A DNA stretch of 64,000 nucleotides, from the NCBI RefSeq assembly GCF_052425735.1, contig NC_135758.1, positions 46,252,001-46,316,000 of the forward strand, read 5' to 3'. The notes below the pieces were generated by a model. That model was not told where the DNA came from, did not search any database, and worked only from the letters and a program-made list of their open reading frames with translations. Source of the DNA: Oculina patagonica (taxonomy: Eukaryota). This document shows, one piece after another, positions 1,008 to 29,754 of the stretch (positions are counted from its first letter, which is position 1; each line of letters begins with the position of its first letter). Both the position numbers and the translations under genes were made by a program.

Positions 1008-2521
1008 TTAGAAGTCCTTTGGACGAATCTTCATCTCGGACCTCTTGACAGACTCACTGTTATTCTTCCAGTGTAACCAGCGCATTCCTCGGTCATCGTT
1101 CTTCCCATTGAGGTAAAAACCATTGAGGTTTACATAATGGCAAGCGTTGTACCACCAGCCGCCTTTATACACCAAGGCACAGTGGCGTGATGAGTCGACG
1201 TCATTATCGCGATCCTTGGTGGAAAATGCAGAGCCACGGTGATAAGCAAGAGAATCACCAGCAGTACCTAGGAAACGAAAACAATTAACTTTGTGTGAGC
1301 AAGTTTATTTTGTTTATCTGTTTGTACAGGCCGAGAGACAAAATTTTTCGAAACAAACTTGGGTGGCTTTTCTTCCAAAATAGGTAGATTTGCTGAAAAA
1401 ACGAAGGAAATATGACGTTTCGATACCGCAATTACGGCAAATGTAGTATATTTTCCAGCTCAAAATTTCATTTACAGAATTAATCAACTCAAACGTAACC
1501 TTTACAAAAGTACCGGCTTACCTGAATAACTTCCCAAATTCAGCTGATATTTCGCTCTCCCACTTGCTACAGAAAACGAGCTGTACTCTGCAAATGCTGT
1601 TTTACCATGGATGTCTTCCAAGTCAACGCGAAGCTTGTTACTGCTGCTTACAGTCAGGCGGTGGATCTTGTCTAGTCCGAGCCAAAACTCGCCGTTCAGA
1701 TTGCCGAAGCCTCGTTTGTAGTCATCCCAAGCTCGGAAGAAATCTACAGAGCCATCCCGTCTCTTCTGAAACACCGTCCATCCTCCACCGGCTGTTTTCT
1801 GATCACAGAAGACTTCAAATTCTCCCAAACCATCAGGATCGATTTTGTACACTCCACTGATCTTGTCACCGGACTTGTAAACTTCGGCACAGTTCTTGTA
1901 AACTGAAAATTGTATAATACAGTTAAGAAGTTATCTCTCCTGATCTTGAATCCTTTACTTTTCCTCGTCAATACCAAATTTTCCCCTCTCTATATTAGCT
2001 TGAAAGATAGCATATAGATTTTTTTTTTTATCTACTGATTTTCGATTGTTTAACATTTAACGTTTATTTTAAGTAAATGCAAGCAACGGAGCAATTGATC
2101 ATGAACACCGAGACAAAGGTCTAACCGAAGAAGTTAAAATAAAATGTTAAAAATCATAAATTGGTTGAAATTAATTGATGCTAAAGTTATACTTTAAAGA
2201 AGGAGAACATAGATACAAATATCGCAAGTTAAAAGTTTTAAAAAGTTGAAAGTTGAAATGTTTTTGTTACAAACCTTTTCCACCCGGGCCGCCAGTTTGG
2301 TTTTCCTTCATTTCCCTGATTTCTTGTTTTATTTCAGCCAGCTCTTGTTTTATTTCAGAAAACATGTTTTCGATTTTCTTAGAGTTTGATCCAGCGATGA
2401 AGTAATTGTTCTTGACAGTACACTGGGAATCTTCGGTGGGTGGCTTTGTCGGCAGATTTGAGTTTGCAAGCGCTGCTGTGAAATAACCCAACAGAAGAGC
2501 TTGGAAGAGATATTTCATCAT
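1008..2521 (-). CDS. Secreted fibrinogen-related domain (FReD/FBG) protein, copy 1; exons 2521-2275, 1902-1522, 1267-1008
   Basis: Exon 1 gives signal peptide MMKYLFQALLLGYFTAALA plus a coiled coil. Exon 2 (381 nt) gives VYKNCAEVY...[47 protein letters not shown]. Exon 3 gives GDSLAYHRGSAFSTKDRDND...GGWWYNACHYVNLNG...MKIRPKDF*. Both introns are GT-AG, phase 1, and the frame is preserved. Confidence 0.93.
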
Positions 2522-4606
2522 GGATCGATTTCTGGAACCTCCTTGTTAGAATGGACAGCTACAGGCAGTGAATGATTCAAGAAGACAAAAAAGCAGTTAA
2601 TATATCTGATCTTTGAGATTTTAAACAATACTTTATGCGTGTCAAATTCTATTTAGGAGCGCGCTCGACCATCACCAATCAAATATCTCCACATTTTCAA
2701 TTTGCGTGCCCAACGTCACTTACAGCTTAAGACTCCATGATGTTTAGAATTCATATATTTTACCAGCTTTAAAAAGACTTTTAAGTTAATCAAAGCTTCT
2801 GACTATTGTTTACGTATCGGGAAGAAAACGCACCAGTAATTGATTGAAAAAAACTCAGTAATGCAGTTCAGACACTTAAAAAGCCCATAAGGCCACTTAA
2901 TAGACACCTTCTGTCATTAACTGCTGATGAAATCGTGATACTCAGGATTGGTATGTTTTATCAGCTTTAAAGTTAATTAAGGCCTTTAAATTAAATATAT
3001 TATTACACAACAGAAAAAAGGGTCCTTTGATGACCGACATAATGTATTTGAGTCGCAACAAAACCTAGAAGTTTTCTTAACAGACAATTTACCTCAATAA
3101 CAGCAAATGAGATTGTGAGGTTTGGAATTAATTTATTTAAATCCAAACTTTCGGAGTATCCCACCACGGAATACGAAAAGGGTTTAACTTGACGTTTCAA
3201 AAACAGTAATGCAGGCTACATTAAACGACAAACGACCCCCCTTTAATTTTACTAACCGTAGCTATTGACACCTTACTTAACTAACAGCTAATGATTTCAT
3301 GATGTTTAGAGTTTGTATATTTTATCAGCTTTATAAAATTTTAAGATAATTAAACCTTTGACTATCGTATTTATTGGCGAATTAAAGACGACCAGTAATG
3401 CAGTCGAAATTATTAAAGAACATAAGGGCGATTACTAATCAGACACCTTGTTATTCCGCACGGGTTTTTGTTCCACTGGGTATTAAAGAAAACATTGGTT
3501 TTATCTAACATATTTTTTCTTCTAATAATTTCAATTTTCTGTAAAGATATTGTGAAAGCAACGCTTTGACGCTGCGATTAATTAAAACTGCCAGACTTCA
3601 CATTGAAGTTTTTTGATTTCGTAGCTGACATTAAACGTGATCGCTGTAAATCAGAACGTATCATACCTTTGTATATCCACCTTTCTTGCTATATCACGAA
3701 AAATATCAGTTGATATAACTAATGCCACGAGTACCTTTCCAGTTCGAAGAAAACAACCAGATAAGAAGCAGATAATTTTTCAAAATGTTCTCGACTTCAA
3801 ACAATTGGTGGAATCGAGTTAATTGGAATATTTAGCAATTATTTACCTAAGTGGCGCATATCCACCGCTTTTAAGCATTTATCAAACTTAAAGTGAAATG
3901 GCCGGCTTAAAAATTTATAGCTTTAATCGAATCATCGAAAAACAAAAAAATCTTTTTCAAAGGGGTTTCGACCGAAAACATCACGAGAAAAGTCGCATGG
4001 TAACATCAAACAATTGACCGAAAAATATTTGTTTTGAGTATTGAATGGATTTATGAAAGTGAAAGTTGTTTTTCTAATCGTTTTATTTCGTCATGGCTTA
4101 CAAGTTTTGTTATTACTGTTCCCTGGGCAATGGAGTGAAAATTGCAGTTCTGAAATCTGCCGCTAGAATCTGAGCCTTGAACAAGATGCAAAGAAGATCG
4201 TGAGAACCAAGGGAAAGAAAATCGAATGCTTGGCTGAACCTGACTTTTTTTTGATTTCCTGGAGAAAGAAGAAGAGCTAGAGATTTGGGAAACCACGAAA
4301 CATTTGACATTGATAAGGCGACCAGAATACTTTCAAACATAACTGGAGACGGAGATTAGTTTAGCGGAAATTTTCCAAATCGTATTCCTCGCCCACAGCT
4401 AAAAGCGTATATAAACACGAGAGGATAACGGCTTTATCCCCTCTTGATATAAAGTAGTGTTTCCCATGATAACGAAAAAATAGTGTAAATAGAAACTTTG
4501 GTCAATCATTGCAGTACCTTTCGGGAGAAATATAGTCATCGACAGAAAAAAGAGAATGTTGCTGTTTATCACTCTCTGTATTACGTTCTGCTATAGCGGT
4601 CACCTT

Positions 4607-4808
4607 TAGGGGTGTCGAATGGCCATGGTAAATGTGAGACTTTGCGAGACGGCGAGACTGTTATCTTTATTGCGAGTCAGAGACCTTTTTAAAAAGAAAT
4701 CGAGACTCCGCGACGACGTCAAAGAAAAATTTGAGACGACGAGACCCCTGAAATTTGGCTAAAATTTTGCGAGACAAGCATTTTTTGAAGGACCATTCCC
4801 CACCCCTA
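4607..4808. mobile_element. Small MITE-like element with GAGAC-rich interior
   Basis: Imperfect TIRs taggggtgtcgaatggcc / gaccattccccaccccta; repeated gagac motifs inside; no clear TSD. Confidence 0.45.
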
Positions 4809-7144
4809 CCTCTAATGACAGCTACGTAAACTTAAATGTGAACTGAAACCTAGTAGCTTGAGTTGCAGCTTCAAAGCATAATTTTTGAAGAAATTTTTGC
4901 TATCGAGATAAAAATAATTCAAGGGAAAATGAGTTTTAACCGTGTAACTATTAAGTATGCACAGAAAAACTGCTTACATTCAAGGTATCCATATTTTTGT
5001 TTTGAATTCTGCGGAATCCGTATTCAACTATGAAGGCTCAGTTTTTAGCGGCCATTCCAAAACTGCAATTCTCTCGCTCCAATCTAAATTAATTTCAGGG
5101 CCAGTAGTAAATTGAAAACCTGTTAACCGTGCATATTAACTAAAATGTTCAAAGTCGACGTACACTGTAAATTCCCTTTGAAATCGACATGGATTTTTAT
5201 GAATCCATTCAACATACCAAACTCGTCGATCGCCAAATGTTGTCAGGTGATTTTCCACGCTTTTCTCGGTCGCGCACACGAAGCATTCTCTTTTGAAAAT
5301 GATTTTTTTTTCGACAAAGAATAAAGCTATAATTTTAGGGCCGACTATTTCACTGGTTTGGTATATATCAAACATTCAAAGCAGATTTTATCTTCATTTC
5401 GGAGAAAAGTGGTGGATATCCACCACTATTAACCTCCACTTCGGCGAACAATTGCATTAATTAAGTATCCCAGATACCACCAACAATTGTTTCAAATCTA
5501 GAATGTTTTGAATATTATTTACTTTTTATTTCCCAACTTGTGCTCGAAGCACAAGTTCTCGCTCGTATGTAAGAGCGCATGGCAAATGCGGTTTTCTCGT
5601 GATATTGAAGAAAAAGCGGATTGAAATAATGTTAAGGAAAATATAGCCATCGAAAGGATGGAGAGAAAGTTGTTTTGCACTAATTAACACTAATTTACAT
5701 TACATCACTAATTTACAGCGATAGCGTTTATTGTCAGCTACGTAAACTTAAATGCATATGTGCCTTTATTGCATTCTCAAAAGGCACCGTTTCACGAAGC
5801 CTTTACTATGAAAGTGAAAATAATTCAAGAGAAAAAATAAGGTTAAAACATGTATGACTTTTAGTGTTCTGGAAACAAGAACTGGTGCAAGATTACTAGG
5901 TGGCTGATGAGTAACTTTATTCAGACACGATAAATTGGTCAGCAGAGCATGTGGGGTCGTGCAATTTTAACTAATTATATAATAAATAACTCGAAAAGGT
6001 TTAAATATATGTACATGATTTAAAGGCACCAAAACAGTTTACATTTTTTATTCGAGCTCTCAAGCAAGATAAATTTCTTTAGATATCTCCTCATTTCCAA
6101 TTTACTTGCCGAAAGTCGCTAACAGCTTAAGATTTCGTGATGTTTAGAATTCTTATATTTTACCAGCTTTAATTTAAAATTGCTTTTAAGATATCCAAAT
6201 CCTTGGATTTACTTCTACGCAATAGAAAAAACACATCAATTTGTGACTAGGAAAACCATTAATTCGGCGATGTTTGGACACGCACCAAAAGTGTTTATTG
6301 CCTTTATAGACTTAGTATAATTTTGCCTGCTTTAGTAACACTTTGAAGATAACTAAAAAAGAACATGAAAACGTTTTCTAACAAATAAGAGAAGACCACA
6401 TCACGCTGTTTTCTTTGAACCAATTAGGAGCCAAACCAAGACCAGTTGCAGTTGGAACCGGCTGATTGGTGAGTTTGATGATGCAAACATACTTGTTCTC
6501 AATAGTGGGAAGGAATAAACATTCTACGTGTTAGTTCGCGATGATTTTATTCTCAGACTCGACATATAAATTCTCCTTACTCTGGATTTCATTTATCCCT
6601 TTTTATTTTAAGGTTTCGATAAAACGCGCGCTCTGATTGGTTGAAAGAGCGTCCTTTATGAGAGTACCAAGGGGTCTGATTTTTGCTTCGGCATTTATCA
6701 CGTGCTTGATTGAACATTTTGCCTTCTGAGAAAATCAATGTTATGACACTTTGAGACAGTTACGCTGAACTTTAAGTAAATATGATAAATTTCATGAGCT
6801 ACCTAGGTAAAAACGTTTCAATCTTATGGATTGCACTAGAAAACTACAATGAACTAAACAGTGCATTACAAAATGCATGCGAAAGCACTGTTTAAACGTT
6901 TACAAAAACTTGACCTCTCAAATTTCTTATATTATGTCCCTTCTCGAGCACGCTCGAAATTTGAGGTTGTTTATAAAATGGAAAGTTCATAAAATTGTGC
7001 AGAATTACGGATTGTAATATTTTCTGGTTTTAAAACATTGCCAAGAAAACTAAGGCAAAAGCACCCTTACTTTACTTATTTTCCGGGGGATAGATACTTC
7101 ACTCCAGTGTGACATACAGCACGCGACACTGAATCTTCAAAATC

Positions 7145-7886
7145 TTAGAAGTCCTTTGGACGAATCTTCATCTCGGACCTCTTGACAGATTCACTTTTAT
7201 TTTTCCAGTGGTACCACGACATTCCTTTTGGGTCGGTTTTCCCATTGAGGTAGAATCCAATAAGGTTTGATTCATGACAGCTATTGTACCACCAGCCGCC
7301 TTTATAGGCTGAGGCACAGTGCAATGACCACTGGTCATTATCGCGATCTTTGGTGCTAAATGATGATCCACGTTGATAGGTGAGAGAATCGCCAGCGGTA
7401 CCTGAAAAAAAAAAAATTCAAAATAAACATGTGTCAATACTTTTATCTTTGTTTATCTGTTTGACCAAGGAACTAATTTTTCCGAAACACCGTAGGGCAT
7501 AAATGGCATTTCTTCCAAGAAAAGGGAATTGTCGAAAAAAAAAGTAAATATAATATTCAGATGTCACAATTAAATGTAGCACATTTCGCAGTGGCAAATT
7601 TCAACCATTCACAGAAGTAATAAAATCAAACTTATCAAAGGTAATGGCTCACCTGAATAACTTCCCAAACTCAACTGATATTTCGCTTTCTCACTTGCCA
7701 CTGAAAATGAGCTATACTCTGCAAATGCTGTGTTACCATGGATGTCTTCCAAGTCAACACGAAGCTTGTTACTGCTGCTTACAGTCAGGCGGTGAATCTT
7801 GTCGAGTCCGAGCCAAAACGTGCCATTCAGATTGCCGAAGCCTCGTTTGTAGTCATCCCAAGCTCGGAAGAAATGTACAGAGCCAT
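7145..7886 (-). pseudogene. FReD copy 2, 5'-truncated (exon 3 7401-7145; partial exon 2 7886-7653; exon 1 absent)
   Basis: Near-identical to copy 4 (22669-23415), including the intron and 3' flank. Homology stops abruptly at 7886 inside exon 2, and no exon 1 lies upstream. It carries NLNG>NLIG and YHRG>YQRG changes. Confidence 0.88.
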
Positions 7887-8258
7887 AGAAGGGATGATGT
7901 TCACCGCACGGTAATAACATTACATTATCCCTTCTCCGGTGGGGTCCGCAGGTAATTTAAACCAAAAGGCCGGGTCGCTAAGCTATTTTCAAACGCTTCG
8001 TGCACGGATCACACAGTCAACGCATGTTTCAACGGCTCTCGATGGAAAAGCCTTGTGACATTTGCAAGCTACATTTGCTCCTTGGCGGTCGTATTTATCA
8101 GATGAAGCACAGAAATGGTTAAAGCAACTATCGGCGGTGCTCTGGGCGAAAATTTGGGGCGATCGGAGCCTTTGGGGCGAATTTATGGCTGAATTCCTTC
8201 AGTCGATCTGCTGGCCTTCGGCACTCGAGTGCCCTACCTTGAGGAATTATATATAGAG

Positions 8259-8603
8259 AGGAAACCAGCGAACCTAAAACCCACTGGAATCGCTACAAAA
8301 CGCCCCCAAACGGCATAGAAATACAAGATTTACATAGAAGAGGATAGGTTAGTCCATTTTATCGGATATTGTCCCTTTATTTTGAATTATTTTTTACGAT
8401 CGTTATATTCCCATACAAACCCTTATAATGATAGGAAACCAGCGAACCTAAAACCCACTGAAATGGCTTCAAATCGCCTCCAATCGGAATAGAAACACAA
8501 GATATAGACAGAAGAGGATAGGTAAGTGAATTTTATTGGATATTTTTCCTCTATTTTGAATTAATTTTTACGATCGTTATATTCCCATACAAACCCTTAT
8601 AAT
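8259..8603. repeat. Two-copy tandem repeat, ~174-bp unit
   Basis: aggaaaccagcgaacctaaaaccc...cgatcgttatattcccatacaaacccttataat at 8259-8429 and 8433-8603. Confidence 0.9.
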
Positions 8604-8811
8604 AACGTTATTACGCAATGTCATATGTGGTCTATATGTTAACGGCTCCTTTAGGAGCTTGGGCTACCTGTGACCTCACCAGTGATTGTAAAAAAACGTC
8701 ATGGAACGATTTCTATAACCTATCAGAAGCGGATTGTTTCATAAAATAATGTGAAAGAAAATAATCTTATCTTATCGCACACGGTAGCAAGGTAACAAAA
8801 GTAACAAGCAA

Positions 8812-9520
8812 TTTTAATCTTCTCAGCACTGGTCTCCTTGACGATGAACTGGGGAGAAATTGGGTAGTCGTCACATTTTAGAGTTTTAAAAAATCGTTAA
8901 AAATCAGTAACAAAGAAGAAAGTCTGACAGAACATTTTCCCAGTTATTTATTTTTTTTATTTTGTACCCCAAGCTTTTCTACACATATTCCGCTGGCACA
9001 GTGTTTATTTTTTTTAATCTAATATACTCTAACATATATTTAAACGAAAAGTTTGAGTGATCTTTGAGTGATCCTTTGGTTCTTTAGAAAAGAAAAAGTT
9101 ATCTTAAAACAAGTGTAGCAAAATTTAATCCGGGAATGTGAAAGAGAAAAAATAATTTATGTGATTTAATAACGATTGCTTCCTTCATTTAGCTTGCATT
9201 AAACGTCAACAGCAAACTAAAAAGTGAACTAAAATATTTTATATTGCTGTCCGATTAAACAAGTTATTTATTTATTTATTTTTCACAGAAACCATTTTTG
9301 TAAACTCAGTACAACTGAAACCCTTCTACTAAGAGAGCTGTGACGATAGCGAGTGGAAAGAAAACGTTTTCAATCCAAAATGTTAATAGTAACTTTCAGA
9401 ACGGATATTGTTTGGTTGTTATAAAATAACAGTGCCAAGGAAACTGCAAAGCACCCTTACGTATAAATATGCTACTCGGTCGTAACATGGAGTAGGGGAC
9501 AGCTGGGAACCTTAGAAGTC
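8812..9520 (-). pseudogene. Ghost FReD unit: 3' flank plus only the final GAC TTC TAA of the gene
   Basis: Aligns to 111-1016 up to ...ccttagaagtc, then jumps to sequence homologous to ~5640 (atatagcca.cgaaa.gatg.agagaaagtt). Confidence 0.75.
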
Positions 9521-9857
9521 CATATAGCCACCGAAACGATGAAGAGAAAGTTATTTTGCACTCTCTATGATATGTTCTGATTTACAGCAATCGCGTTTAA
9601 TGTCAGCTACGTAAACTCAAATGTGAAATCTGTCAACCTTTATTGCAGCCTCAAAGGTTGCCTTTTGACGAAGCCTTTACTATGAAAATGAAAATAATTC
9701 AAGAGAAAAACTAGGGAAAAATGTATGGCTTTCAGCATGCTGGAAACAAAAACTTGTGCAAGATTGCTAGGTTGCTGTTGAGAAACTTTATTGAGACACG
9801 ATAAATTGGTCATCAGAGCTGGTGGGGCCGTGTAATTAGAACTAATTATAAAATAAA

Positions 9858-10475
9858 TTACCGTACCCAAATTCGCAAGTAGCCAATCAGAAGCGCGATC
9901 TACTGTCCTGATATCCTACGATATCAAGCCACTGATCTGATATGCCACCATAGCACGGTCACTTTGAAGTAAAGTAGTGTTACTGTACGATGAATTGAAA
10001 AAAGATTTTACCAATAAAACAGAAAATCGTAATTTAAATTTAGCGGTGTTTAGCGGTCGTAAAAAGAGAAAAACTTTCCCGCCAAAACTAAACTTGAGCG
10101 CGCTCGCCAATTGCGTGATGTTTGCCGACGAGTACTGAGACATTCAGAGACTGAAAATCTAAACAAACGAGTGAAAAAACGGCAGAACAAGACTGACTTG
10201 GTAAAAGTGTTGAAGACCAAGTCAACACAATTAGCAGTACGTACCTTGCAAGCATGGCTTCAACAGAGCGATAAATATCACCGGATTTTTGGCTGAATTT
10301 GGGTACGGTAAATACCTAATCGTACCTTTTTGGTACGCTTCGGCTGCATAACAGGCTCGTTTGGTCTCGCCATGGGTATTTTGGCTCGACTGCGTCTCGC
10401 CAAAATACGAACCATGGCTCGACGAAACTCGCCTGATATGCCGCCGAAGCGTACCAAAAAGGTACGATTAGGTAT
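9858..10475 (+). mobile_element. Non-autonomous fold-back element, possibly Crypton-derived
   Basis: Absent from paralogous sites (~5985, ~16140). Inverted pair ttaccgtacccaaattc 9858-9875 / 10295-10312, a 164-bp fold-back at 10312-10475, and a degenerate peptide TKSTQLAVRTLQAW. Confidence 0.55.
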
Positions 10476-11452: not shown

Positions 11453-12747
11453 TTAGAAGTCCTTTGGACGAATCTTCATCTCGGACCTCTTGACAGACTC
11501 ATCGTTATTCTTCCAGTGGTACCAGCGCATTCCTCGGGTATCATCCTTCCCATTGAGGTACAAACCATTCAGGTTTGAGGAATGGCAACTGTTGTACCAC
11601 CAGCCGCCTTTATAAGACAAGGCACAGTTGGATGACCACTGGTCATTATCGCGATCTTTGGTGGTGAATGCTGAGCCACGGTGATAGGTAAGAGAATCGC
11701 CAGCGGTACCTGAGAAATGAAAAACAATTTAGCGTTAAATGGTGTAAATAAGTTAAATTCGTTGATCAGTTTGTACAGACCGAGGAATTAATTTTCCGAA
11801 ACAAACGTGGTTGGCGTTTTCCTTCAAGAAAGGTAATTGCCGAAAGTTCGAGGCAGCTGCAAACTTCATTCACAAAAAAATAATGTCAAACTTAACAAAG
11901 GTACTGGCTCACCTGAATAACTTCCCAAATTCAGCTGATATTTCGCTCTCTCACTTGTCACTGAAAACGAGCTGTACTCTGCAAATGCTGTTTTGCCATG
12001 GATGTCTTCCAAGTCAACGCGAAGCTTGTTACTGCTGCTTACAGTCAGGCGGTGGATCTTGTCGAGTCCGAGCCAAAACTCGCCGTTCAGATTGCCGAAG
12101 CCTCGTTTGTAGTCATCCCAAGCTCGGAAGAAATCTACAGAGCCATCCCGTCTCTTCTGAAAGACCGTCCATCCTCCACCGGCTGTTTTCTGATCACAGA
12201 AGACTTCAAATTCTCCCAAACCATCAGGATCGATTTTGTACACTCCACTGATCTTGTCACCGGACTTGTAAACTTCGGCACAGTTCTTGTAAACTGTAAA
12301 TTGTACATCAGTTTTAACATTTTAATAGAACCTGCTTTAGAGTCAAAAGCTTGCACTTAACAATAAAGCAGTTAAAACAACAGTATCTCGGACGACAAGA
12401 AATCACTGGAGTTTCAAAACGTTTTTATATTAGTACAAACCTTTTTCTCCCGGACCGCCAGTTTGATTTTCTTTACATTTCCCGATTTCCTGTTTCAATT
12501 CGGCCAGCTGTTGCTTCACTTCAGAAATCATGTTTTCTATTTTCTTGCAGTTTGGTCCAGCGAAGAAGCTGTTGTAATTGTGGTTGTTATTGACATTACA
12601 CTGGGAGAATTTCGGTGTCGTCAGCTTCCTCGTTGTCGACCATGACAGAAATGTTGGTGTCGTTGGCTTCCTCGTTGTCGACAGAAGTGAGTTTGCATGC
12701 ATCGCTACAAAAGAACTCATCAGGAGAGCTCGAAAGAAATACTTCAT
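11453..12747 (-). CDS. Secreted FReD protein, copy 3; exons 12747-12441, 12293-11913, 11709-11453
   Basis: Signal peptide [18 protein letters not shown], Thr/Pro-rich linker, coiled coil, 381-nt exon 2, and exon 3 [46 protein letters not shown]...KDF*. GT-AG introns, open frame. Confidence 0.93.
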
Positions 12748-12829
12748 TGTGGATCGACGCTTGTAAATATTCGTCAGTATAGAGCACCAACAGGCTACAA
12801 ACAGCGAATGAATCCACGAGACTCCAAAA

Positions 12830-12925
12830 GCCGTTTATATGATATGTTGTTTGAGCTTGCTCTTTCAAAATTCTATTTCAGGAGCACGTTTATCGCCAAT
12901 CAAATATCTCTACATTTTCCAATTA
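12830..12925 (-). promoter_or_regulatory. Putative proximal promoter (TATA-like ATATAAA plus CCAAT block) shared by FReD copies
   Basis: Minus-strand ATATAAAC ~90 nt upstream of the ATG, and a conserved ccaatcaaatatctc block. Equivalent motifs lie upstream of copies 1 (2595-2695), 4 (25523-25625) and 5 (29840-29925). Confidence 0.45.
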
Positions 12926-15193: not shown

Positions 15194-15391
15194 ACGACAT
15201 TGCTGCTCCTAGCATTATGCAGGACGTGCATATCAACCTACTGAATGGCCTAGCTCACAACGAGTCTCTCGTAGCTTTGTTGGTTAGAGCGCCATACCGG
15301 TAACTGGGATGCCATGGGTTTGATTCCCGTCGGGGACTCAGATTTTTTCTTTGTCCCATGCTCGTATCATGTTGAATACTTCATCTTTATT
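15194..15391 (+). mobile_element. Second, more decayed copy of the tRNA-like repeat
   Basis: High similarity to 445-598, including the 5' leader aaccta.t.aatggcc.agctcacaac and the 3' tail. Absent from the paralogous segment at 32220-32385. Confidence 0.8.
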
Positions 15392-18300
15392 ACGAAAATA
15401 GATTCACTATGAAACGAACAGAATTGACAAGTTTTCTAGAAATCAAATTCATTCAACACACGGAACACGTCGATCGCCAGATGTTGCCACTCCCGCTTCC
15501 CTCGACCCCGCGCTCGAAGTATTCTCATTTGGGCGGCTATTTCACTGGTTTGGTATATAGATATATAGCAAAGTAAGCTTTTTACTTCAGGTTGGATACA
15601 AATTGTTGTATACACACCACTTCGGCGAACAATTGTAAGTTAAGCCGATCCCATTTACAACCAACGCTTCAAATCTAGAATGTTTTCGAAAACTATTTAC
15701 TTTTTATTCCCAACTCGCGCTCGTAGCACAAGTTCTCGGTCGCATGTAAGAGCGTATGTAAAATGAGGTTTTTCGTGCTGTTGGATTGGAGTGATTTCAA
15801 GGGGAAATATAGCCATCGAAAGGATAAAGAGAAAGTTGTTTATCCGACTGTGATACGTTCTGTTCCGCAGCGATCGCGTTTAATGTCAGCTACGAAAACA
15901 TAGCTGATATTATCAGGCAGCTTATATTGCAGGGCCAAAGAGTGCTGTTTCACGAAGTCTTCACTATGGCAATGAAAAAAAAATTCAAGAGAAAAATCTA
16001 TGGTTATAAAATGTATCACTTTTAGTATGCACAAAAACGAGTGTAAGAGTACTAAATAAATGAGTACTGACTTTATTTGGACACGATAAATTGATCAGCA
16101 GAGCTGATGGGGCCGCCCAACTATAATTATATTGTAAATAAACTTAAACTTTAAATGTATGTACATGCTTCCAAGTCACCAAATCAGTTAGTAATTTTTT
16201 TCTAAAATTTTAACAAGATCATTTTTGTGTTTAGATATCTCCTCATTTCTAATTTACGTGCTGAACGTCACTTACAGCTTTCGTGATGTTTAGAATTCGT
16301 ATATTTTACCAGCTTTAAAATTGCTTTTAAGCCTTTGACTGTAGTATTCAGAATAGAAAAAAAGCATGCATTATTAATTAAAACACCCAATTAATGAAGT
16401 GATGTTGAGACAAACACAAAAAGCTCATAAGGTGTCTAAACAGACACAGTCATTAACAGCTGACGAGGTTGTGGTATTCAGTATTCAAAGCTTTTAATTA
16501 TATCATTACAGAATAGGAAAAAGCATCCTTTCATAACAGAAAAACGACCAATGCAGTCTATACACACGTCAAAACTCCTAAGTTAATTGTCTCAACAGAC
16601 AACTTACGACAAACAAACAGCCAAAAAGGTCGTGATGTTAAGAATTTGTTTATTTTAAAGCCAAGACGTTTGAGTATCCTATCGAGGAATAAGAAAGATG
16701 TAAGTTGATGTCTCAGAAAAACTCAGTTTTCTTAGGTCACCAACAGCAGATGATTTCATGATATTCAGTGTTCATTTATTTTATCAGCATTATTAATGCT
16801 TTTTACGAGAACCAGAGCCTTAACTTATCGTATACAAATGGAGCAAAAATAGTGTTTGAGGAGGGATTAATGCAGTAGAAATCGTGCAAGCAAGGACTAT
16901 AAGGAAACTTGCTTAACAGACACCTCGTTATTTTGCACATTTTTTGTTCCCTATATACTAAAAACTCACACATTTTATCTTAACGTATTTTTCTCCTGAA
17001 TAATCTTCATTTCAGGATTTTACGAAAAGCTATGCTTTGACGCTGCGCTGTAAGCATTAGATTTCACATTAAAGTTTACGTAGCTGACGTTAAGCGTGAT
17101 CGATGTAGATCAGAAACTTATCACAAAGACTGAAAAACAACTTTCTCTTCATCCTGTCGTCGGCTATGTTTTCCTTAAAAAATACTCCAATGCATGCACA
17201 GAAGTTGGTATATCTATTTTCTTTTCACGATATCACGAAAAAGATCAGTTAATATACGTTACTGCAGCAAGCGAGAACTCATGCCACAAGTACCAGCCCG
17301 AAAATAAGCAGCAACTAATTTTTGAAACATTCTCGATTTGAAACATCTCTTACCCCATTCTGTGGAATCATGTTTTCCAAAACAAAACACCGTTGTCCTT
17401 TAATCTTAAAAATTTGTAAACATCACGAAAAAAGATTTACTTAAGGACTTTACGTCCACGAAAGCGAACAGAAGTGACAAGTTTTCCTGAAATCGACTTA
17501 GTTTTTTAATATAGATCCATTCAGTAACATAACACGTCGATCGCCAGATGTTGCCATGCGATTTCCACGCTTTTTTCTGTCGCGGACACGAAGCATTCTG
17601 TTTTGACAAGGGGTTTTCGATTTTTCGTCTAAGAATAAAGCTATAATTTTAGGGCAAGCTATTTCTCTTGTTTGGCATATATCAAAACAATTTTTCACGT
17701 CAGTGTCGTTTAAAAGTGGTGAATATCCATCACTATTAACCTCCACTTCGGCGAACAATTGCAAGTTAAGTATCCGAGTTACCATCAACAATACTCGGTG
17801 AGTGTTCCAAATCTAGAATCTTTAAAAAATATTTACTTTTTATTTTTCGACTCGTGCTAGAAGCACGCGTTCTCGCTCGCATTTAGAAGCGTATTGTCCA
17901 ATTTTTCGTGATACAAGGAAAGAGCGGATTGGAGTAGTTTAAAGGAAAAATCTAGCCGTCGAAACGATGAAGAGAAAATTGATTTTTAGTCTCTATGAAA
18001 CGTTCTGATTTACAAGGATCATGTTTAATATCAACTACGCTAAATTATTATGTGTAAAATGCGAAATTATTTGAGATTTCAAACTAGATCATTTTTCGTG
18101 GGTCTAATCTCATTTTAGAAGCTGTTTTTCGCCAATCAAACACCTCCACATTTTTAATTACCGTGCCAAAAGCGAAGAACGAAATTGCCAGTATATTAAA
18201 ATAAAACGCTCATAAAACTTGCACTCGTTGTAGGTGACATTCTTGCCGCAATCGATCGATCTCGACTCTTCTTCTGTGCTGTAAAACGTTTTTCCACTTG

Positions 18301-21310: not shown

Positions 21311-21879
21311 TTGTTAAATATTCTATGTCCCGGCAAAAGTTACAGTAAAATGTTTGGGACGGAACCCCGATATAACAATCTTCGATATAACGATATTCCC
21401 GATATAACGATGCGAATTTAGCAGACCGAACGTAAAATCTTTCCCGATATAACGATATTATCAGTACACAGTCACAAAACATCGAATTTAATACAATAAC
21501 ATTAGAGTAATCGAGTAATCTCTAACGTTTCTGTAAACAGACGGCACGATGATATACGAAATATCAGCGGGCATTACCCCGGAGAGAGTATGCTCGCAGG
21601 CTAGCATTTCGTGCGGTTTGAAGAACTTTCGGCTGATTTTTTTTAGGTCATGACAACGAATCTGCAAAATGACTGGCCTTCGATTAACGAGATTTTCAAG
21701 CCAATGAAGTGAATATGTCGATGAACTTTATTTTATATGTAAACCAGTTTAAACTAGTAAGCTAAGTTAGCGAACTGGACTTTCTTTCGAGTTACCGGTA
21801 AAACAAACTAAAGGGGAAAAACGAAGGAACTATCATTTCTTCGTTTTTATTTGCTTGCCTCACGACTGATTGGTTATAA

Positions 21880-23415
21880 AAGAGAACATGAAACGTTTTC
21901 TAACAAATAAGAGAAGAACACATCACGCTGTTTTCTTTGAACCGATTAGGAGCCAAACCAAGACCAGTTGCAGTTGGAACCGGCTGATTGGTTAGTTTGA
22001 TGATGCATGGGAAGGAGTAAACATTCTACGTGTTAGTTCGCAATGATTTTATTCCTAGACTCGACATATAAATTCTCCTTACTCTGGATTTCATTTATCC
22101 CTTTTTATAATAAAGTTTCGATATAACGCGCGCTCTGATTGGTCGAAAGAGCGTCCTTTATGAGAGTACAAAGAACGGTACTCACGCCATCATCCGCAAG
22201 GTCTGATTTTTGCTTCCGCATTTATCACGTGCTTGATTGAATATTTTGCCTTCTGAGAAAATTAAAGTTATGGCATTTTGAGACAGTTACACTGAACTTA
22301 AAGAAAAGATGATACATTCCATGAGCTACCTAGGTGAAAACTTTTCCATCTTATGGATTGCACTAGAAAACTACAATGAACTAAACAGTGCATTACAAAA
22401 TGCATGCGATAGCACTGTTTAAAAGTTTACAAAAACTTGACCTCTCGAATTTCTTACATTATGTCGCTTTCTCAAGCACGCTCGAAATTTTTGGTTGTTC
22501 ATAAAATGGAAAGTCCATAAAATTGTGCAGAATTACGGATTCTAACATTTTCTAGATTTAAAACATTGCCAAGAAAACTATGGCAAAAGCACCCTTTACT
22601 TATTTTGCGGAGGATAGATACTTCACTCCAGTGTGACATGCACCACGCGACACTGAATCTTCAAAAACTTAGAAGTCCTTTGGACGAATCTTCATCTCGG
22701 ACCTCTTGACAGATTCACTTTTATTTTTCCAGTGGTACCACGACATTCCTTTTGGGTCGGTTTTCCCATTGAGGTAGAATCCATTAAGGTTTGATTCATG
22801 ACAGCTATTGTACCACCAGCCGCCTTTATAGGCTGAGGCACAGTGCAATGACCACTGGTCATTATCGCGATCTTTGGTGCTAAATGATGATCCACGGTGA
22901 TAGGTGAGAGAATCGCCAGCGGTACCTGAAAAAAAACAACAATTCAAAATAAACATGTGTCAATACTTTTATCTTTGTTTATCTGTTTGACCAAGGAACT
23001 AATTTTTCCGAAACACCGTAACGCATAAATGGCATTTCTTCCAAGAAAGGTAATTGCCGAAAAAAAAAAAAAGCAAATATAATATTCAGATGTCACAATT
23101 AAATGTAGCACATTTCGCAGTGGCAAATTTCAACCATTCACAGAATTAATAAAATGAAACTTGTCAAAGGTAATGGCTCACCTGAATAACTTCCCAAACT
23201 CAACTGATATTTCGCTTTCTCACTCGCCACTGAAAATGAGCTGTACTCTGCAAATGCTGTGTTACCATGGATGTCTTCCAAGTCAACACGAAGCTTGTAA
23301 CTACTGCTTACAGTCAGGCGGTAAATCTTGTCGAGTCCGAGCCAAAACGTGCCGTTCAGATTGCCGAAGCCTCGTTTGTAGTCATCCCAAGCTCGAAAGA
23401 AATGTACAGAGCCAT
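21880..23415. repeat. Segmental duplication paralogous to 6358-7886
   Basis: Near-identical 3' flank, exon 3, intron 2 and part of exon 2 of copies 4 and 2. Confidence 0.9.
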
Positions 23416-25437
23416 CGCGTCTCTTCTGAAACACCGTCCATCCTCCACCGGCTGTTTTCTGATCACAGAAGACTTCAAATTCTCCCAAACCATCAGGATC
23501 GATTTTGTACACTCCACTGATCTTGCTACCAGACTGGTAAACTTCAGCACAGTTCTTGTTAACTGCAATTTGTACAGTTCAAGGAAGTCAGCATGCAATC
23601 CCTCCCTCTGAGACTTTGTTTTTACAACATATATTCGTTAAAAACTGCCTTAAAATACTTAAAAAGTTGACACTGGTTTAAAAAGAATGTTTCTGGGCGT
23701 TTTGGTTATATTACTTCTGTTACCTTCTTCAGCAAAATATGTAACTTGTAAAACGGCGTCCCTGGTGTTATAAAGAGAAAGACCCTTACGCACACTAAAA
23801 CACGGACGAGGAGCATTCCAAAGCCAACAATGGACAAAAATTACTTACTGGCCGAACACCATTTTCTTCACCATAGTTGATAGAGGGAAATGATTAGGAA
23901 GTCCGTTTCTCAATCGATACCAATCGATAGTATTTTAATTTTTTCTGTGAGTTTGATATCGATTGTTATGGATTAAAGATTTGAATCGATATCCATCGGT
24001 TGTTGATATCGATTGATATAGATTGATTTCCGATGTTGACCTTTATCGATTGACTACGCCTGGATTTATAAGTACCTTTAGAATTTTTAAAGGGGCATTG
24101 TCACCGAGATTTAGTGGCCTGGCCTTGTTTAAACGTAGTGCACTAGTGATGAAAATTGTTAAAAGTACATGGTGAGGCCGCAGACAGGTAAGAAGAAAGT
24201 GGCCTAAAACTTGGAAAGGTCCGGCCGACGTTTTTAAGTTTGACAGTGTTACTTGGAAGAAATTCACATAAAAACCATTGATTATGGTTTATTTACATCT
24301 TGAAGAATGAATTAAAGCCCTTCCTTTATTTCAGTGTAAAAGTTATTTTGTTGATCACTGAGTGTACCCTCACAGTTCTAGCATAGTTTTCACAAAAAAC
24401 TTAGAAAGAACTTAAGGCTTGTTAAAACGAGCAATTGTTATGTGACAATTTTTATTTCCTCGTGTATACGAGGAAAATTGGACAAACTTTTATGTGACGA
24501 ATATATTTGTTGAGAAGCTGGCGTGTAGTTTTCATGTGACAAATAAAAGTTGTCACATTAAAAAAAAAATGTTCGTGTAGACGACTCGTCGCATAAAATG
24601 TTGCAAAAATTGCGACAGCGTAATTATGCGGTCCCCAGTGTCCCAATCGCCACACTGGGCACTGCGCTCGCGTATCTCTGTGCGTATCTCATTACTGGCG
24701 CAGTTGAAAAATAATTGTTGTGCCATTTACACGATCAAATATATCTGTCACATAAAACTGCCTGTGTAAACCCGGCTTTAGAAGACTTCTCGTGACACAG
24801 TCACTTTAACAACGTGTCACCTGTTTCACGCTTTTGTTTAAAATCGTGATTTGAATTTCAACCCCCCATTTTGCTTAGAAGACCCACTGTCACCGTTTTC
24901 TGCATTTTTAGTTCTTTATTCTTATAACACCAGGGACGCCGTTTTACAATTTACATATTTTGCGGAAGAAGGTTACAGAAGTAACCGAGACGTCCAGAGA
25001 CTTTCTTTTTAAGCCAGTGTCAACTTTTTAAGTATTTTAACTCAGTTTTTAAAATATATTCTACTTAAAAACCATTCTACTGAACACCTAACTGAAGCAG
25101 TCTAAAACAACAGTATACACGCGACAAAACATTGCTAAAGTTTGACTCAGTTTTGTTACCGTGACAAACCTTTTCCAATCGGGCCGCCAGTTTGGTTTTC
25201 CTTCATTTCTCTTATTTCTTCTTTTAGATCGCCTAGTTGTTGTTTCACTTCAGAAAACATGCTCTCGATCTTCTGATAGTTTGGTCCGGTGTAGAAGCTG
25301 TTGTAATTATTGTTGACGTTACACTGCGAAGCTTTCGTCGTGCCGTTGTTATTTTTCGCGGGTTCCGTCGTCAGATTTGAGTTTGCAAGAGCCGCTGCAA
25401 AATAACCCAACAGAACAGCTTGAAAGAGATATTTCAT
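22669..25437 (-). CDS. Secreted FReD protein, copy 4; exons 25437-25170, 23562-23182, 22925-22669
   Basis: Signal peptide MKYLFQAVLLGYFAAALA. Same exon phases and exon 2/exon 3 sizes (381, 257 nt) as copies 3 and 5. Intron 1 is expanded to 1.6 kb by nested inverted-repeat elements. Confidence 0.92.
23638..25052. mobile_element. Element with ~135-bp inverted arms in intron 1 of copy 4, containing nested MITEs
   Basis: 23638-23773 is the reverse complement of 24922-25052. Internal TIR pairs at about 24087/24809 and 24413/24780, and an ATCGAT-rich repeat at 23912-24063. Confidence 0.75.
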
Positions 25438-26724
25438 CGCGCGATTCAATGGTTGTAAAATTTGTTATTATTGGGAATCAAAAGCTTCAAAGAACAAATG
25501 ACTCGACAATAGTCAAAAACCTGTTTATATGATGTGTTGCTGGAGCTTCCAAACAAGATTTTTCCCGCGTCTAGTTCTATTTTAGGAGCGTGTTTACATC
25601 AGTACACCAATCAAATATCTCCACATTGCTGCAGGACGTCACGGTAACTAGCTTTGTGATAGTCATAATTTGGTGTTTTTTTCTACAACTCTCACCCGTC
25701 TATGCTTGAGATGGCCAAAGAGTTTCGACATCGTTATACGGAACTTAATAAGCCAGCAGTCGAAACTCGTCATTTTATTTATTTTTTAACTGACACTCGG
25801 CTAAGACACTTTGTTGTTACGCAGTGTTCTCTGCATGCTCAAAGGCGATACATTTCCTTTCAAATAATACCTGCTTAACAAGTCCACTTTCTCTTGAAAT
25901 CTCAATATCAACAGTTGAAATACGAAAACGTTTTTGGCTGTAGCCAAAAAAAGCCGTCAATTCGTTTCAATTTGTGACTCTATCTGAGTACACTTCACGG
26001 CTTCTGACTTGAAGGAGTTCACATGTCTAGAAGGCACTATAATTAATACGGGTAGACAATAAACACAGATTTTCATTAAAAATCTCGATATGACGCTACC
26101 ATAAAAACGGCTGGGTTTCAAAAAGCAGTTTGCACTTTGAGTCTAGTGCGTATCGATAATTGGAATTTGAAAGATAATTCAATGCTCGCACAAATCGAAA
26201 TATTCACGACTTCCATCAACACTGCACCATACTAACACCTTGAATACGTGCGAACGATTAATTTCAAAAGGTAAAAACGGAAATAAATAATTTTTTAAAT
26301 GAATATCGCTTGAAACAATTGTTGGTGGTTACTAGAGCATACATCGAACGAGGCACTTTCGCTGAGAAATTAGCATAGCGATTGATTTTTTTCTTCTTCA
26401 ACGATTCAACCAACCAGGAATTGCTCAAAAACTTTTGTTCGCGCTACAAATGCTACAATTTATTACTTGAAGGCTGTAAAATGTGATAGCGTTTTTTCTT
26501 TTTTCAATTGACTTTTTGTGTTTCTCAAACATCTCTCATAGGTATATTTATTCAAACACAGACATACGATAGTTACTTTTGTTTCCTGTGTTGAAAACAC
26601 AGGAAACAATTTTATTATTTGTGGAATAAGAGATTACTGAATAATTAAATTTTATTGCAATAAATCAACTTGCAGATTCTGTTTTTATTTACAAATTAAA
26701 TGGAATTTAACTTAACTTGAGATA

Positions 26725-26780
26725 GGCTCACCCGGCAGTGAATATTTTCCCAAATTCAGTTGGCATTTCGCCCTCTGACT
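26725..26780 (-). pseudogene. Degenerate relic of the FReD exon 2 3' end and splice donor
   Basis: ggctcacc[cggcag]tgaatattttcccaaattcagttggcatttcgccctctgact versus ggctcacctgaataacttcccaaattcagctgatatttcgctctctcact at 11906-11955. Confidence 0.55.
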
Positions 26781-28371
26781 TTAACGTCATGCATACATCG
26801 CCAGGCTGTTAGTTAGTCCAAGATGGCCGGTTCTCAATCTTTGGACTACATCAGACAATAAATTGAGCTTGAGTTTGAATAGTCTTTGGAAGCTGAAATT
26901 TTGATGCTTTCTTTATATGTCCTTTTTATATTACCTTTTCGTTCAGGTGAAGAAAAAAAGTACCATTTTGGAATGAACTTCACCTTTAAAGTAAAACTTA
27001 TTCTTCCAGTGCCATGGCCATAAGTTACTGGGAAAAATAATTCGGAGTTTTCCCAACGAGTTTAACCTATTTACTTCTCAGCCGTATTAATTTATTGCGA
27101 ACTTAAAAAAAACGTCAGACAATTTCACATTTATTATTTTGGCTTCCATGCAATCACGTTTGCTTTCCAGTTACACTAAAGGCATTCACTTAATAACCTT
27201 GAACACTCGAAAATTTTCAGTCGACTTATTCATCGATATAATTTTAGTCATAGTTTTAAGTTAGGCGTCTATAGTAATGTTCTCTTGTGAATAAGTAGGA
27301 TACGTTCAGAATTTCGTAAGTGAAATGTTAGCTATCAACCCAAAAGCTCCATTTAAATAGCAACGGCGTTAATAATCGTCAACCATCAAAACTGTTATAA
27401 ACCACTTACTAAGTCCCTCACATTCTGTACTATCTAGTGAGACAGGGGCCTGAAGAGGTGAAATGGGAACTGGGATTTGAGCAAATCTTCACTGGGAAAA
27501 TGAGACTTGAGTCACTCGGAATAGGAATCACAAAAAAAAAAACTATTTGGGAAAACGATAAGCTGCGAAATGGGTATTATACCGAAATGAGAGTTCGCTC
27601 AGTACTTTGTATTTGCGAGGAAAAAAAAACAGATATTGATTACACTTAAAAGTTTAAGAAAAAGAAGAGACAGTCAGCAAAATTAGTTTTTTCCCAATCA
27701 TTTATTTTTATTAGCACCACAAGCGCAGCTTACATAGGCTTACTTCCTTGGCTAGGAACCATTTTTCCATTATATTCCCACAAAAAATGAACTTGGAGAT
27801 TTAACTATTTTTCAGGTTATCAAAAATCAAGTCATCTTGAAATAGTCAATCATGACAAACAAATGACGGAGTAACAGCATAAAATAAACGGCACATACTT
27901 TTTAGCTTTTAGGAAAAGTAAAGTGAAATATAAAGAATCTATAGCTGCAATAACCTAGAAAATGGGTATCGCTTCGCAGTCTGTGATTTTAGACTCTAAC
28001 AGACATCCTTTTCAGGTTGTTCTTCCACATTAATAACTCAACGAAAAAAACATTTGTACCTACACTGATGAAGTGTCTAATGCGAGAAAATATTAACTGC
28101 ATAAAACCTTTTATGCACAAAATTTAAAGTTCAACGAATATATTTTCTCTTCCCCACATTTTCCTGTGCAATGTCTTGGAGGGTGATTCTTGATATCTCC
28201 CATATGTGTCTAAATATCACCCCTACTATTAAATTTGTAAGTTTATGAGCGAAACTACGAATACTTTCTGGTTGTTACAAACGGCACCAAGGAAATGTGT
28301 ACAGCAGAAGCACCCTTAATTTTTTTGGATAGTTTTATTTCCCTTTTAATTCAAGTAACCGACACTGAATC

Positions 28372-29754
28372 TTAGAAGTCCTTTGGACGAATCTTCATCT
28401 CGGACCTCTTGACAGATTCATTCGTATTCTTCCAGCGGTCCCAGCGCATTCCTTGACCACTGATCTTGCCATTGAGGTACAAACCATTGAGGTTTGAGTG
28501 GGCGCAAGCCTTGTACCACCAGGCGCCTTTTAGAGCCAAGGAACAGTTGCTGGACCACTCGTCATTATCGCGATCTTTGGTGGAAAACTGTGCGCCACGA
28601 TGATAAACAAGAGAATCACCAGCAGTGCCTGAAAGAAAGGAGAAAATAACAACTGTACCATTCTTCTTGATTATTCGATTGTGTTTTGCTGAAGATAAGA
28701 GAACAATACGATAAATAACTACACACTTTCGGTTTTATCAAAGGACTCTGATAAAAACAGCTTGGTGTTCTTTCATTTCAAAAACAAAATCAATCTTAAT
28801 CATTTGAAACTGACAACAGAAGTTAGAACATCAATTATGCTTTAATACATTTTCGCCTTTTTTCTTTCGGGGAAGATAACATGCCAAAAAATATATAATT
28901 TTTATTGTTTCTGGTGTGCAGGAGCTGATTTTATTCCAAATAATAGAGTAACTCCAACAGAGGCAAGCTCACCTGAATAACTACCCAAACTCAGCTGGTA
29001 TTTTGCTCTCTCACTTGTCACGGAAAATGAGTTGTACTCTGCAAATGCTGTTTTACCATGGATGTCTTCCAAGTCAACGCGAAGCTTGTTACTGCTGCTT
29101 ACAGTCAGGCGGTGAATCTTGTCGAGTCCGAGCCAAAACTCGCCGTTCAGATTGCCGAAGCCTCGTTTGTAGTCATCCCAAGCTCGGAAGAAATCTATAG
29201 AGCCATCCCGTCTCTTCTGAAACACCGTCCATCCTCCACCGGCTGTTTTCTGATCACAGAAGACTTCAAATTCTCCCAAACCATCAGGATCGATTTTGTA
29301 CACTCCACTTATCTTTTCACCAGACTGGTAAACTTCGGCACAGTTCTTGTAAACTGCAAATTATACATATCTGCCTTAGAACAGTTAAAACAACAGAATC
29401 TCAGACGACAAGGAATCACAGAAGTTTCAAAACGTTTTAGTACAAACCTTTTTCTCCCGGACCGCCAGTTTGATTTTCTTTACATTTCCCGATTTCCTGT
29501 TTCAATTCGGCCAGCTGTTGCTTCATTTCAGAAATCATGTTTTCTATTTTCTTGCAGTTTGGTCCGGCGAAGAAGCTGTTGTAATTGTGGTTGTTATTGA
29601 CATTACACTGGGAGAATTTCGGTGTCGTCAGCTTCCTCGTTGTCGACCATGACAGAAATGTCGGTGTCGTTGGCTTCCTCGTTGTCGACAGAAGTGAGTT
29701 TGCATGCATCGCTACAAAAGAACTCAACAGGAGAGCTCCAAAGAAATACTTCAT
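28372..29754 (-). CDS. Secreted FReD protein, copy 5; exons 29754-29448, 29353-28973, 28628-28372
   Basis: Exon 1 is nearly identical to copy 3. Exon 3 is divergent: [86 protein letters not shown] introns, open frame. Confidence 0.93.

Follow-up and report, generated by a model that had tools for sequence, protein, structure and literature searches.

In vertebrates and plants, clusters of tandemly arranged immune genes such as KIR, MHC and NLR evolve by the birth and death of paralogs, and non-allelic recombination or gene conversion homogenizes some of their segments and shuffles others, giving rise to hybrid genes and pseudogenes. Partial concerted evolution accompanied by hybrid genes is textbook behavior for tandem immune families, and a general model for such families was reportedly set out by Nei and Rooney in 2005 (cited in PMC10236652). 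Corals, which to our knowledge have no antibodies, rely on expanded families of pattern-recognition proteins, and how these families generate and keep their diversity is an open question. A well-resolved case is offered by an array of fibrinogen-related (FReD) genes in the scleractinian Oculina patagonica, part of which lies in the 64,000-nucleotide stretch analyzed here (GCA_052425735.1, CM126635.1:46,252,001-46,316,000; hereafter the window).

Two lines of earlier work come closest. Reports on the snail Biomphalaria glabrata propose gene conversion and point mutation as sources of diversity in its FREP genes (PMC3313920, PMC7588048). For corals, Noel et al. (2023; PMC10236652) describe gene conversion as very rare among tandem duplicates. 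In the literature we found no description of partial concerted evolution for coral fibrinogen-related genes. In the array described below, one exon appears to have been homogenized across at least 17 paralogs, while exon 3, which bears the predicted pocket, diverges and recombines with different 5' modules.

The FReD array

The window holds five FReD copies, all on the minus strand, four of them intact three-exon genes and one truncated (tblastn and frame inspection). Their outer limits are those given by the initial annotation, from the stop codon of copy 1 at 1008 to the ATG of copy 5 at 29754. Window copies 1 to 5 are called c1 to c5, and array members outside the window carry names beginning with g or gL. 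A profile built from the window exon pieces and one full-length relative recovered the window's own proteins and a dozen close annotated paralogs on the same chromosome. The array spans at least 370 kb and its sampling is incomplete: about 150 kb of neighboring sequence, out of some 390 kb, within 46.01-46.39 Mb (loci L004-L010) added 13 paralogs, for a total of 18 gene loci including the window, with an identical three-exon layout and all on the same strand. One of these loci overlaps the window itself, positions 64000-59203 of the minus strand being 100% identical to L005 16835-21632. Intact gene models were obtained by splice-site mapping as spliced open reading frames (ORFs). Those of c1 and c3 are identical, residue for residue, to the annotated proteins P0271 and P0270, and eight more models in the array are exact matches (ten in total).

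Exon 2 measures 381 nt in 4 of 4 intact copies and has AG/GT, phase-1 borders. The full-length match to the Pfam domain Fibrinogen_C (PF00147) makes the products FReD proteins: profile positions 2-129 align with exon 2 (E = 2e-49) and 138-221 with exon 3 (E = 7e-28), while exon 1 has no Pfam match. Exon 1 would encode a leader peptide together with a variable linker and a heptad-like stretch, possibly a coiled-coil stalk; exon 2 encodes the conserved core of the fibrinogen domain and exon 3 its predicted calcium- and ligand-binding end. Judged by their sequences, the array proteins are putative secreted fibrinogen-related lectins.

Uniformity of exon 2

The initial annotation had described an invariant exon 2 between diverging introns and exons. 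Near-identity is correct, since exon 2 is 93.1-98.1% identical in all pairs of window copies, and so is the divergence around it, exon 3 being 76-86% and exon 1 71-82% identical when two young pairs are excluded. "Invariant" is too strong a word, as exon 2 has 39 variable sites among the window copies and 119 among 18 array members. Synonymous divergence (dS, by the Nei-Gojobori method) in the window amounts to 0.065-0.18 in exon 2, 0.28-0.72 in exon 3 and 0.53-0.95 in exon 1. The same ranking holds in the array. Among 17 paralogs (136 pairs) the mean p-distance is 0.197, 0.065 and 0.190 in exons 1, 2 and 3, respectively, and among 13 intact genes (78 pairs) the median dS is 0.654, 0.165 and 0.467. 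The idea of exchange around exon 2 would be at odds with equal dS in exons 2 and 3; exon 2 dS is about one third of exon 3 dS and lower in 78 of 78 pairs of intact genes. Synonymous divergence is thus lower in the homogenized segment than in its coding flanks, as concerted evolution predicts. The ratio of nonsynonymous to synonymous divergence (dN/dS) in the 13 intact genes is 0.27 in exon 1, 0.27 in exon 2 and 0.41 in exon 3. Because dN and dS drop together, exon 2 looks like a segment of younger coalescence rather than one under stronger protein constraint.

Two further comparisons bear on the age of exon 2. Its distances are flat when plotted against those of exon 1 (slope 0.02, intercept 0.061), and in young whole-gene duplicates it is more diverged than its surroundings (c1/g151 and g50/g146, pooled Fisher p = 0.014). 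Between c1 and g151 the divergence is 4.7% in exon 2, compared with 2.0% in exon 1, 2.4% in intron 2, 3.1% in exon 3 and 2.5% in the flanks. Between g50 and g146 it is 4.2% in exon 2, 2.1-2.7% in exon 1 and intron 2, 4.3% in the 94-nt intron 1, 1.2% in exon 3 and 2.2% in the flanks. The exon 2 nearest to that of c1 belongs not to the sister gene g151 but to c3 (1.8%).

Overlapping antisense coding was considered as a cause of the low exon 2 dS and rejected, each antisense frame containing 1-10 stops. The number of antisense stops varies by copy and lies near the expectation from synonymous resampling; long plus-strand ORFs do cross exon 2.

Genealogies of the three exons

The three exons yield different trees. 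That of exon 1 resolves five clades with 100% support, that of exon 2 is a star in which the sole supported clade consists of c4, c2 and g22, and that of exon 3 contains clades differing from the exon 1 set. In approximately unbiased (AU) tests, the exon 2 data reject the exon 1 tree (log-likelihood difference 50.8, p = 0.0012) and the exon 3 tree (45.9, p = 2e-5), the exon 1 data reject the exon 3 tree (342) and the exon 3 data reject the exon 1 tree (87.5). Each exon therefore rejects the maximum-likelihood trees of the other two (AU p <= 0.0012). Congruent per-exon trees, which would have spoken against a mosaic array, were found in no cross-assignment. Tests of named clades agree: exon 3 data reject c3 and c5 as sisters (p = 9e-5) as well as clade A (p = 0.004), and exon 1 data reject {c5, g34, g45, g140} (p = 2e-4). 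Because exons 1 and 3 reject each other's groupings in this way, the exon 3 clade of c5, g34, g45 and g140 is paired with three different exon 1 clades. The pairwise homoplasy index (PHI) computed on the concatenated exons is likewise significant (p = 0.001). Distances in exons 1 and 3 have a Pearson/Mantel correlation of 0.35 (p = 4e-4) and a rank correlation of 0.08; the positive value is attributed to recent whole-gene duplicates.

Chimeric genes

The initial annotation had noticed that copies 3 and 5 share exon 1 and upstream sequence and differ in intron 2, exon 3 and the 3' flank, and this is borne out by self-BLAST. Two blocks, 11907-15197 matching 28967-32228 (88.7%) and 15392-17351 matching 32381-34389 (80.5%), take in exon 2, intron 1, exon 1 (98.4% identical) and about 4.6-5.5 kb of upstream sequence, whereas introns 2 and the 3' flanks are unalignable and exon 3 is 81% identical. 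The maximum chi-square breakpoint falls 6 nt past exon 2, with a divergence of 5.3% to its left and 41% to its right (permutation p <= 0.001). In its 5' half c5 tracks c3 (90.5%) over a stretch that reaches from 1.5 kb or more upstream to the sixth nucleotide past exon 2. In its 3' half it tracks g34 (72-87%), beginning 14-17 nt before exon 2 and taking in intron 2, exon 3 and some 800 nt of 3' flank. The two affinities of c5 overlap in exon 2 only, and c5 is demonstrably a true chimera.

An independent event lies outside the window, in another exon 1 clade, and breaks at the same place. There, gL5b and gL5c have 1.65 kb in common at 91.4% identity, ending 4 nt past exon 2, beyond which come unrelated introns (244 and 1506 nt) and exons 3 that are 81% identical. 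In c5 and in gL5b/gL5c, then, the 5' and 3' parts derive from different lineages and the switch lies in the shared tract; g014 is a further mosaic case (p = 0.013). In a table of nearest neighbors by segment, several genes combine the upstream region, exon 1 and intron 1 of one lineage with the intron 2, exon 3 and 3' flank of another, and in most genes the nearest neighbors of exon 2 are unrelated to those of either flank. As a candidate origin of both young pairs, a single two-gene duplication (c2-c3 giving c4-c5) does not suffice by itself, the 4.0-kb and 5.6-kb stretches between the blocks being unrelated.

Two other cases of sharing that the initial annotation had listed fare less well. 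Copies 2 and 4 do have an exon 3 in common (99.2% identical), but they are not reassortants: the whole remaining length of c2 is common to c4 (91.9%), and c2 is therefore a partial duplicate and a pseudogene. The exon 1 said to be common to copies 1 and 4 is weakly similar (81.5% identity, dS 0.57) and falls into different, well-supported exon 1 clades. As their exons 3 are about as distant (dS 0.72), these two genes are old paralogs and not products of reassortment.

Origin of the uniform exon and the chimeras

Three observations call for an explanation, namely the low dS of exon 2, the differing genealogies of the three exons and the positions at which homology breaks. We consider it probable that homology-dependent processes in the germline both homogenize exon 2 and exchange the modules 5' and 3' of it. 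Since the flanking introns are unalignable between most members, exon 2 is the only long tract (381 nt, 89-98% identical) alike in all of them, and non-allelic strands would pair there. Repeated non-allelic gene conversion would keep the copies within about 2-11% of one another whatever the age of the genes. Divergence of the flanking introns, too great for heteroduplex formation, would restrict this conversion to exon 2, and the uniformity so maintained would leave a substrate on which later events could act. Less often, cross-overs or long tracts starting or ending in exon 2 (and, in one case or more, at the conserved 3' end of exon 1) would join the upstream region and exon 1 of one lineage to the intron 2, exon 3 and 3' flank of another, leaving chimeric genes such as c5, duplications and deletions. 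The molecular events themselves (conversion and unequal cross-over) and their germline timing are deduced from their traces, and new combinations of stalk and binding site may have been of benefit.

A number of results weigh against this account. Some of them would suit an exon 2 that evolves slowly without any conversion, through constraint on the domain core or on synonymous sites or as a mutational cold spot, the mosaics then being partial duplications combined with uneven divergence. Exon 2 distances scale with those of exon 3 (r = 0.54, slope 0.26), as a uniformly slower clock would also predict. Inside exon 2, PHI finds no distance-dependent recombination signal (p = 0.89, 36 informative sites), so that conversion tracts are not statistically detectable there and the limits of single tracts could not be drawn; several exon 3 sister pairs, taken singly, are not rejected by exon 2 data. 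Exon 2 is also the best-conserved exon in comparison with other corals, and constraint therefore contributes to its conservation: it differs by 10.6-14.7% from three foreign coral sequences, none of them a true ortholog, as against 6.5% within the species and about 26-28% for exons 1 and 3 between species. These foreign fragments, L001 from an ENA assembly and L002 and L003 from Tara coral metagenomes, are distant, incomplete and unfit as orthologs. In the exon 2 tree all three sit on long branches of the star, and the AU test neither supports an exclusive clade of O. patagonica copies nor rejects it (p-AU = 0.44).

A slow clock is nevertheless unlikely as the explanation. The dN/dS of exon 2 equals that of exon 1, with dS lowered as much as dN, and in the young duplicates exon 2 has diverged further than the introns and exons next to it. 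Neither the exon 1 tree nor the exon 3 tree survives testing against the exon 2 data, the nearest neighbors of exon 2 are in most genes unrelated to those of the flanks, and no open antisense frame or other overlapping element is seen in exon 2. The whole fits a homogenization of exon 2 by exon-limited gene conversion, and not by selection alone. Within exon 2, 43% of informative site pairs are incompatible and differences cluster locally, for example at positions 227-275 in g50/g146; inside exon 3, PHI gives no spatial signal.

On the same side of the balance as the clock-like features of exon 2 stand several features of the chimeras. The halves of c5 are unequally close to their relatives, at 90% for c3 against about 75-82% on the 3' side (72-87% for g34, the nearest gene sampled), and among the sampled loci no reciprocal or parental arrangement of equal closeness was found. 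A single simple unequal cross-over between sampled genes does not explain c5, and a site-by-site comparison with both parental lineages did not locate the cross-over point within exon 2. The close 5' kinship of g16 to g151 (92.6%) stops 14 nt after exon 1, that is, in intron 1. Exon 2 is hence not the sole break site, and the role of exchange hub that the initial annotation had assigned to it would apply to c5 and gL5b/gL5c and not to every break.

The different age of the halves of c5 could also point to non-homologous or microhomology-mediated rearrangement (template switching, deletions, transposons), in which case the coincidence with exon 2 would be partly an illusion, exon 2 being the only alignable place. 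The array does contain clear junctions of this kind, such as c2, which breaks off at exon 2 position 148 and abuts jumbled sequence, and a gene-sized deletion between 9521 and 9522, and retroelement ORFs lie nearby. Such joins, however, would rarely preserve an intact in-frame 381-nt exon with working splice sites, which both chimeric pairs keep. In these two independent pairs, whose exons 1 belong to different clades, homology ends at the same border of exon 2, to within 4-6 nt. The only clear non-homologous join in exon 2, that of c2, gave a pseudogene. We regard rearrangement of this type as decidedly unlikely to be the origin of the chimeras.

Homology-dependent homogenization and exchange, our preferred reading, may or may not have been favored by selection. 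Shuffling could conceivably be selected combinatorial diversification instead of a side effect of homology-dependent repair among tandem genes. The stronger form of this idea, in which exon 2 is itself a selected recombination hub, providing a common subunit interface that would allow mixed oligomers and, through module shuffling, a wider recognition repertoire, strikes us as very unlikely.

The assembly was checked at c5 with short-read contigs. A 505-nt contig (run X8) matches 28558-29062 without a mismatch and ties together c5 exon 3, the whole of intron 2 and 90 nt of exon 2; run X8 may represent the assembled individual. Among the contigs aligned to 27900-30300, no single independent read or contig crosses the whole of exon 2, and the linkage between the 5' and 3' parts of c5 consequently rests on the chromosome assembly, a further point against the chimeric reading. 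The summed depth over exon 2 is about 3,300-5,500 in three DNA-type runs, as expected of a repeat collapsed in short reads. In Logan contigs of three DNA-type runs, summed word depth rises to about 2,000-5,500 over exons 2 and 3 (28305-28628, 28973-29357), against 0-100 over intron 2 and the greater part of the 3' flank; since exon depth is so far above that of intron 2, the family exons are highly multi-copy and collapsed in short-read assemblies. Runs with three organism codes hold family exons at 95% identity or more. An assembly artifact, in which paralogs were joined through a near-identical exon 2 repeat, could draw on the short-read unitigs that break in exon 2 at depths in the thousands and on the want of an independent molecule spanning it, yet it is extremely improbable, as between 7 and 40 sites distinguish one exon 2 copy from another, a repeat of just 381 nt is set in a 49-Mb chromosome-scale sequence, the perfect 505-nt contig ties c5 intron 2 to exons 2 and 3, no reciprocal mis-joined partner occurs among 18 loci, the c3 and c5 5' modules are 10% diverged and so real paralogs, and ten gene models translate exactly to annotated proteins.

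The predicted ligand-binding end

The closest solved structures are those of tenascin-R (E = 6e-72), FIBCD1 (E = 3e-67), ficolin-1/2, MFAP4 and tachylectin 5A, the PDB matches to tenascin-R, FIBCD1 and ficolins all having E <= 1e-60. In FIBCD1, Tyr405 and His415 are residues of the acetyl pocket S1 (PMC3908420), and their equivalents were mapped with the numbering of that report and the fixed spacing from two cysteines. The Tyr431 equivalent is not reliably mappable, and the comparison of pockets is one of the Tyr405 and His415 equivalents. The calcium-site D-x-D, a Cys at +8 and a second Cys 13 residues further on are present in 14 of 14 members with an intact frame. The two pocket residues are kept in c1, c3, c4, g22, g146 and g014. 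They are replaced by Leu/Ala in c5, Arg/Ala in g34 and g140, Ser/Gln in gL5a, Tyr/Gln in gL5b and g16, and Phe/Tyr in gL5c. Because these positions vary among members, exon 3 modules probably differ in ligand preference.

FIBCD1, the ficolins and tachylectin 5A thus resemble the array proteins in having a full fibrinogen C domain, an Asp-x-Asp calcium site and a Cys-Cys bridge with 13-residue spacing, and c1, c3 and c4 in particular retain the Tyr405 and His415 equivalents. The exons 3 of c5, g34 and g140, which form a clade, depart from this pattern, with Leu or Arg at the first position and Ala at the second, and other members have Gln or Tyr at the second. Among metatranscriptome proteins, none is at least 85% identical to any array member, and one RNA run compared with the c5 region yielded no reads.

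Other features of the array

Coordinates of the features in the window are collected in Table 1.

Table 1. Features of the FReD array within the window (positions in nucleotides from the first letter of the window)
Feature	Position	Strand	Details
c1 (copy 1), intact, 295 aa	1008-2521	-	exon 1 2275-2521; exon 2 1522-1902; exon 3 1008-1267; exon 1 clade B; = P0271; Pfam Fibrinogen_C
c2/c4 common block	6354-7886	-	= 21877-23415 at 91.9%; 3' flank, exon 3, intron 2 and 3' part of exon 2
c2 (copy 2), truncated pseudogene fragment	7145-7886	-	exon 2 positions 148-381 (7653-7886); intron 2; exon 3 7145-7401; without exon 1
Ghost of deleted gene (apparent)	8814-9861	-	c1-type 3' flank with last 10 nt of exon 3 (8814-9521) joined to c1-type far-upstream sequence (9522-9861)
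c3 (copy 3), intact, 314 aa	11453-12747	-	exon 1 12441-12747; exon 2 11913-12293; exon 3 11453-11709; exon 1 clade A; = P0270, ACROYT_G003987
c3 5' module	11907-17351	-	exon 2, intron 1, exon 1 and about 4.6 kb upstream; homology to c5 stops 6 nt into intron 2
c4 (copy 4), intact, 301 aa	22669-25437	-	exon 1 25170-25437; intron 1 1607 nt; exon 2 23182-23562; exon 3 22669-22925
c5 (copy 5), intact chimera, 314 aa	28372-29754	-	exon 1 29448-29754; exon 2 28973-29353; c5-specific intron 2 28629-28972; exon 3 28372-28628
c5 5' module	28967-34389	-	homologous to c3 5' module
Exon 3 of next array member gL5c (= P0283)	62350-62603	-	exons 1 and 2 past window end

Scars of other events are scattered among the genes. 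The homology of c2 to c4 stops abruptly at 7886, at a non-homologous join inside exon 2. The sequence upstream of it (7887-8813) is a patchwork that includes 85 nt of c1-type 3' flank and a fragment of the gL5a intron 2 (89-92%); the fragment consists of two overlapping blocks, shifted by about 175 nt relative to each other, and so contains an internal tandem duplication. Beyond this patchwork, self-BLAST aligns 112-445 with 8814-9142, 644-1017 with 9151-9521 (90.7%) and 5641-5990 with 9522-9861, the last of these corresponding to sequence about 3.1 kb upstream of the c1 ATG; a whole c1-type gene appears to have been deleted at 9521/9522. At least five members of the array are pseudogenes, namely c2, g50 (a frameshift in exon 1 and bad donor sites), g45 and g019 (deletions of 14 and 16 nt, respectively, in exon 2) and g151 (a stop codon within exon 2). 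Among the intact genes, c4 is a whole-gene duplicate of g22, which lies outside the window. An isolated exon 3 near 62.4 kb was considered as a stray and is instead the final exon of the neighboring gene gL5c.

Larger rearrangements and annotation problems were also seen. The gene g34 and a copy 148 kb away encode an identical 300-aa protein, P0276 (L009:10001-12159 and L010:10001-12158, at about 46.38 and 46.23 Mb), and after both genes come an identical relic fragment of exon 1 and a c4-type exon 1; the pair looks like a recent large segmental duplication inside the array. The public annotation seems to merge some members and to start others at the wrong place. A 463-aa model covers both c1 and the neighboring pseudogene g50 (L008:1755-7825). 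P0275, the 310-aa annotated model of g22 (L004:10001-15737), begins about 2.4 kb upstream of the mapped exon 1, where a relic exon 1 fragment lies, and is 97% identical to the mapped 301-aa model over 296 residues. Reverse-transcriptase ORFs (RVT_1, zf-RVT) between array members (L006:1-1138, L005:21471-21632) indicate that retroelements are interspersed with the lectin genes. Self-comparison of the window further revealed dense, staggered direct repeats, about 80-87% identical, at 38757-39571.

Comparison with known systems

The genes c3 and c5, with the same stalk and promoter region and different predicted binding ends, are concrete and testable objects, in a species that features in the literature on Vibrio coral pathogens. 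The array also cautions against handling genes of this sort as single units in gene-tree and orthology pipelines.

In snail FREPs the fibrinogen domain is reportedly preceded by immunoglobulin superfamily (IgSF) domains, and diversification is said to be somatic and centered on the IgSF part. The B. glabrata genes resemble the coral array in that both are multi-copy tandem families of invertebrate fibrinogen-domain lectins for which exchange between members is proposed as a source of diversity. They differ in that the coral proteins appear to consist of a leader, a stalk and a fibrinogen domain only, the evidence, from one assembly and short-read contigs, is of germline change only and the homogenized part is the fibrinogen core. 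From the KIR, MHC and NLR clusters the array is set apart by protein family and phylum, and by a homogenized tract that is one whole exon between unalignable introns.

Like the coral tandem duplicates of Noel et al. (PMC10236652), the FReD genes form a long-lived, same-strand, immune-type tandem array in a scleractinian genome. Their exon-limited homogenization and chimeric members provide a counter-example on the scale of one family, and for this family the published rarity of coral gene conversion is contradicted. The array is a clear new example of a known process of gene-family evolution.

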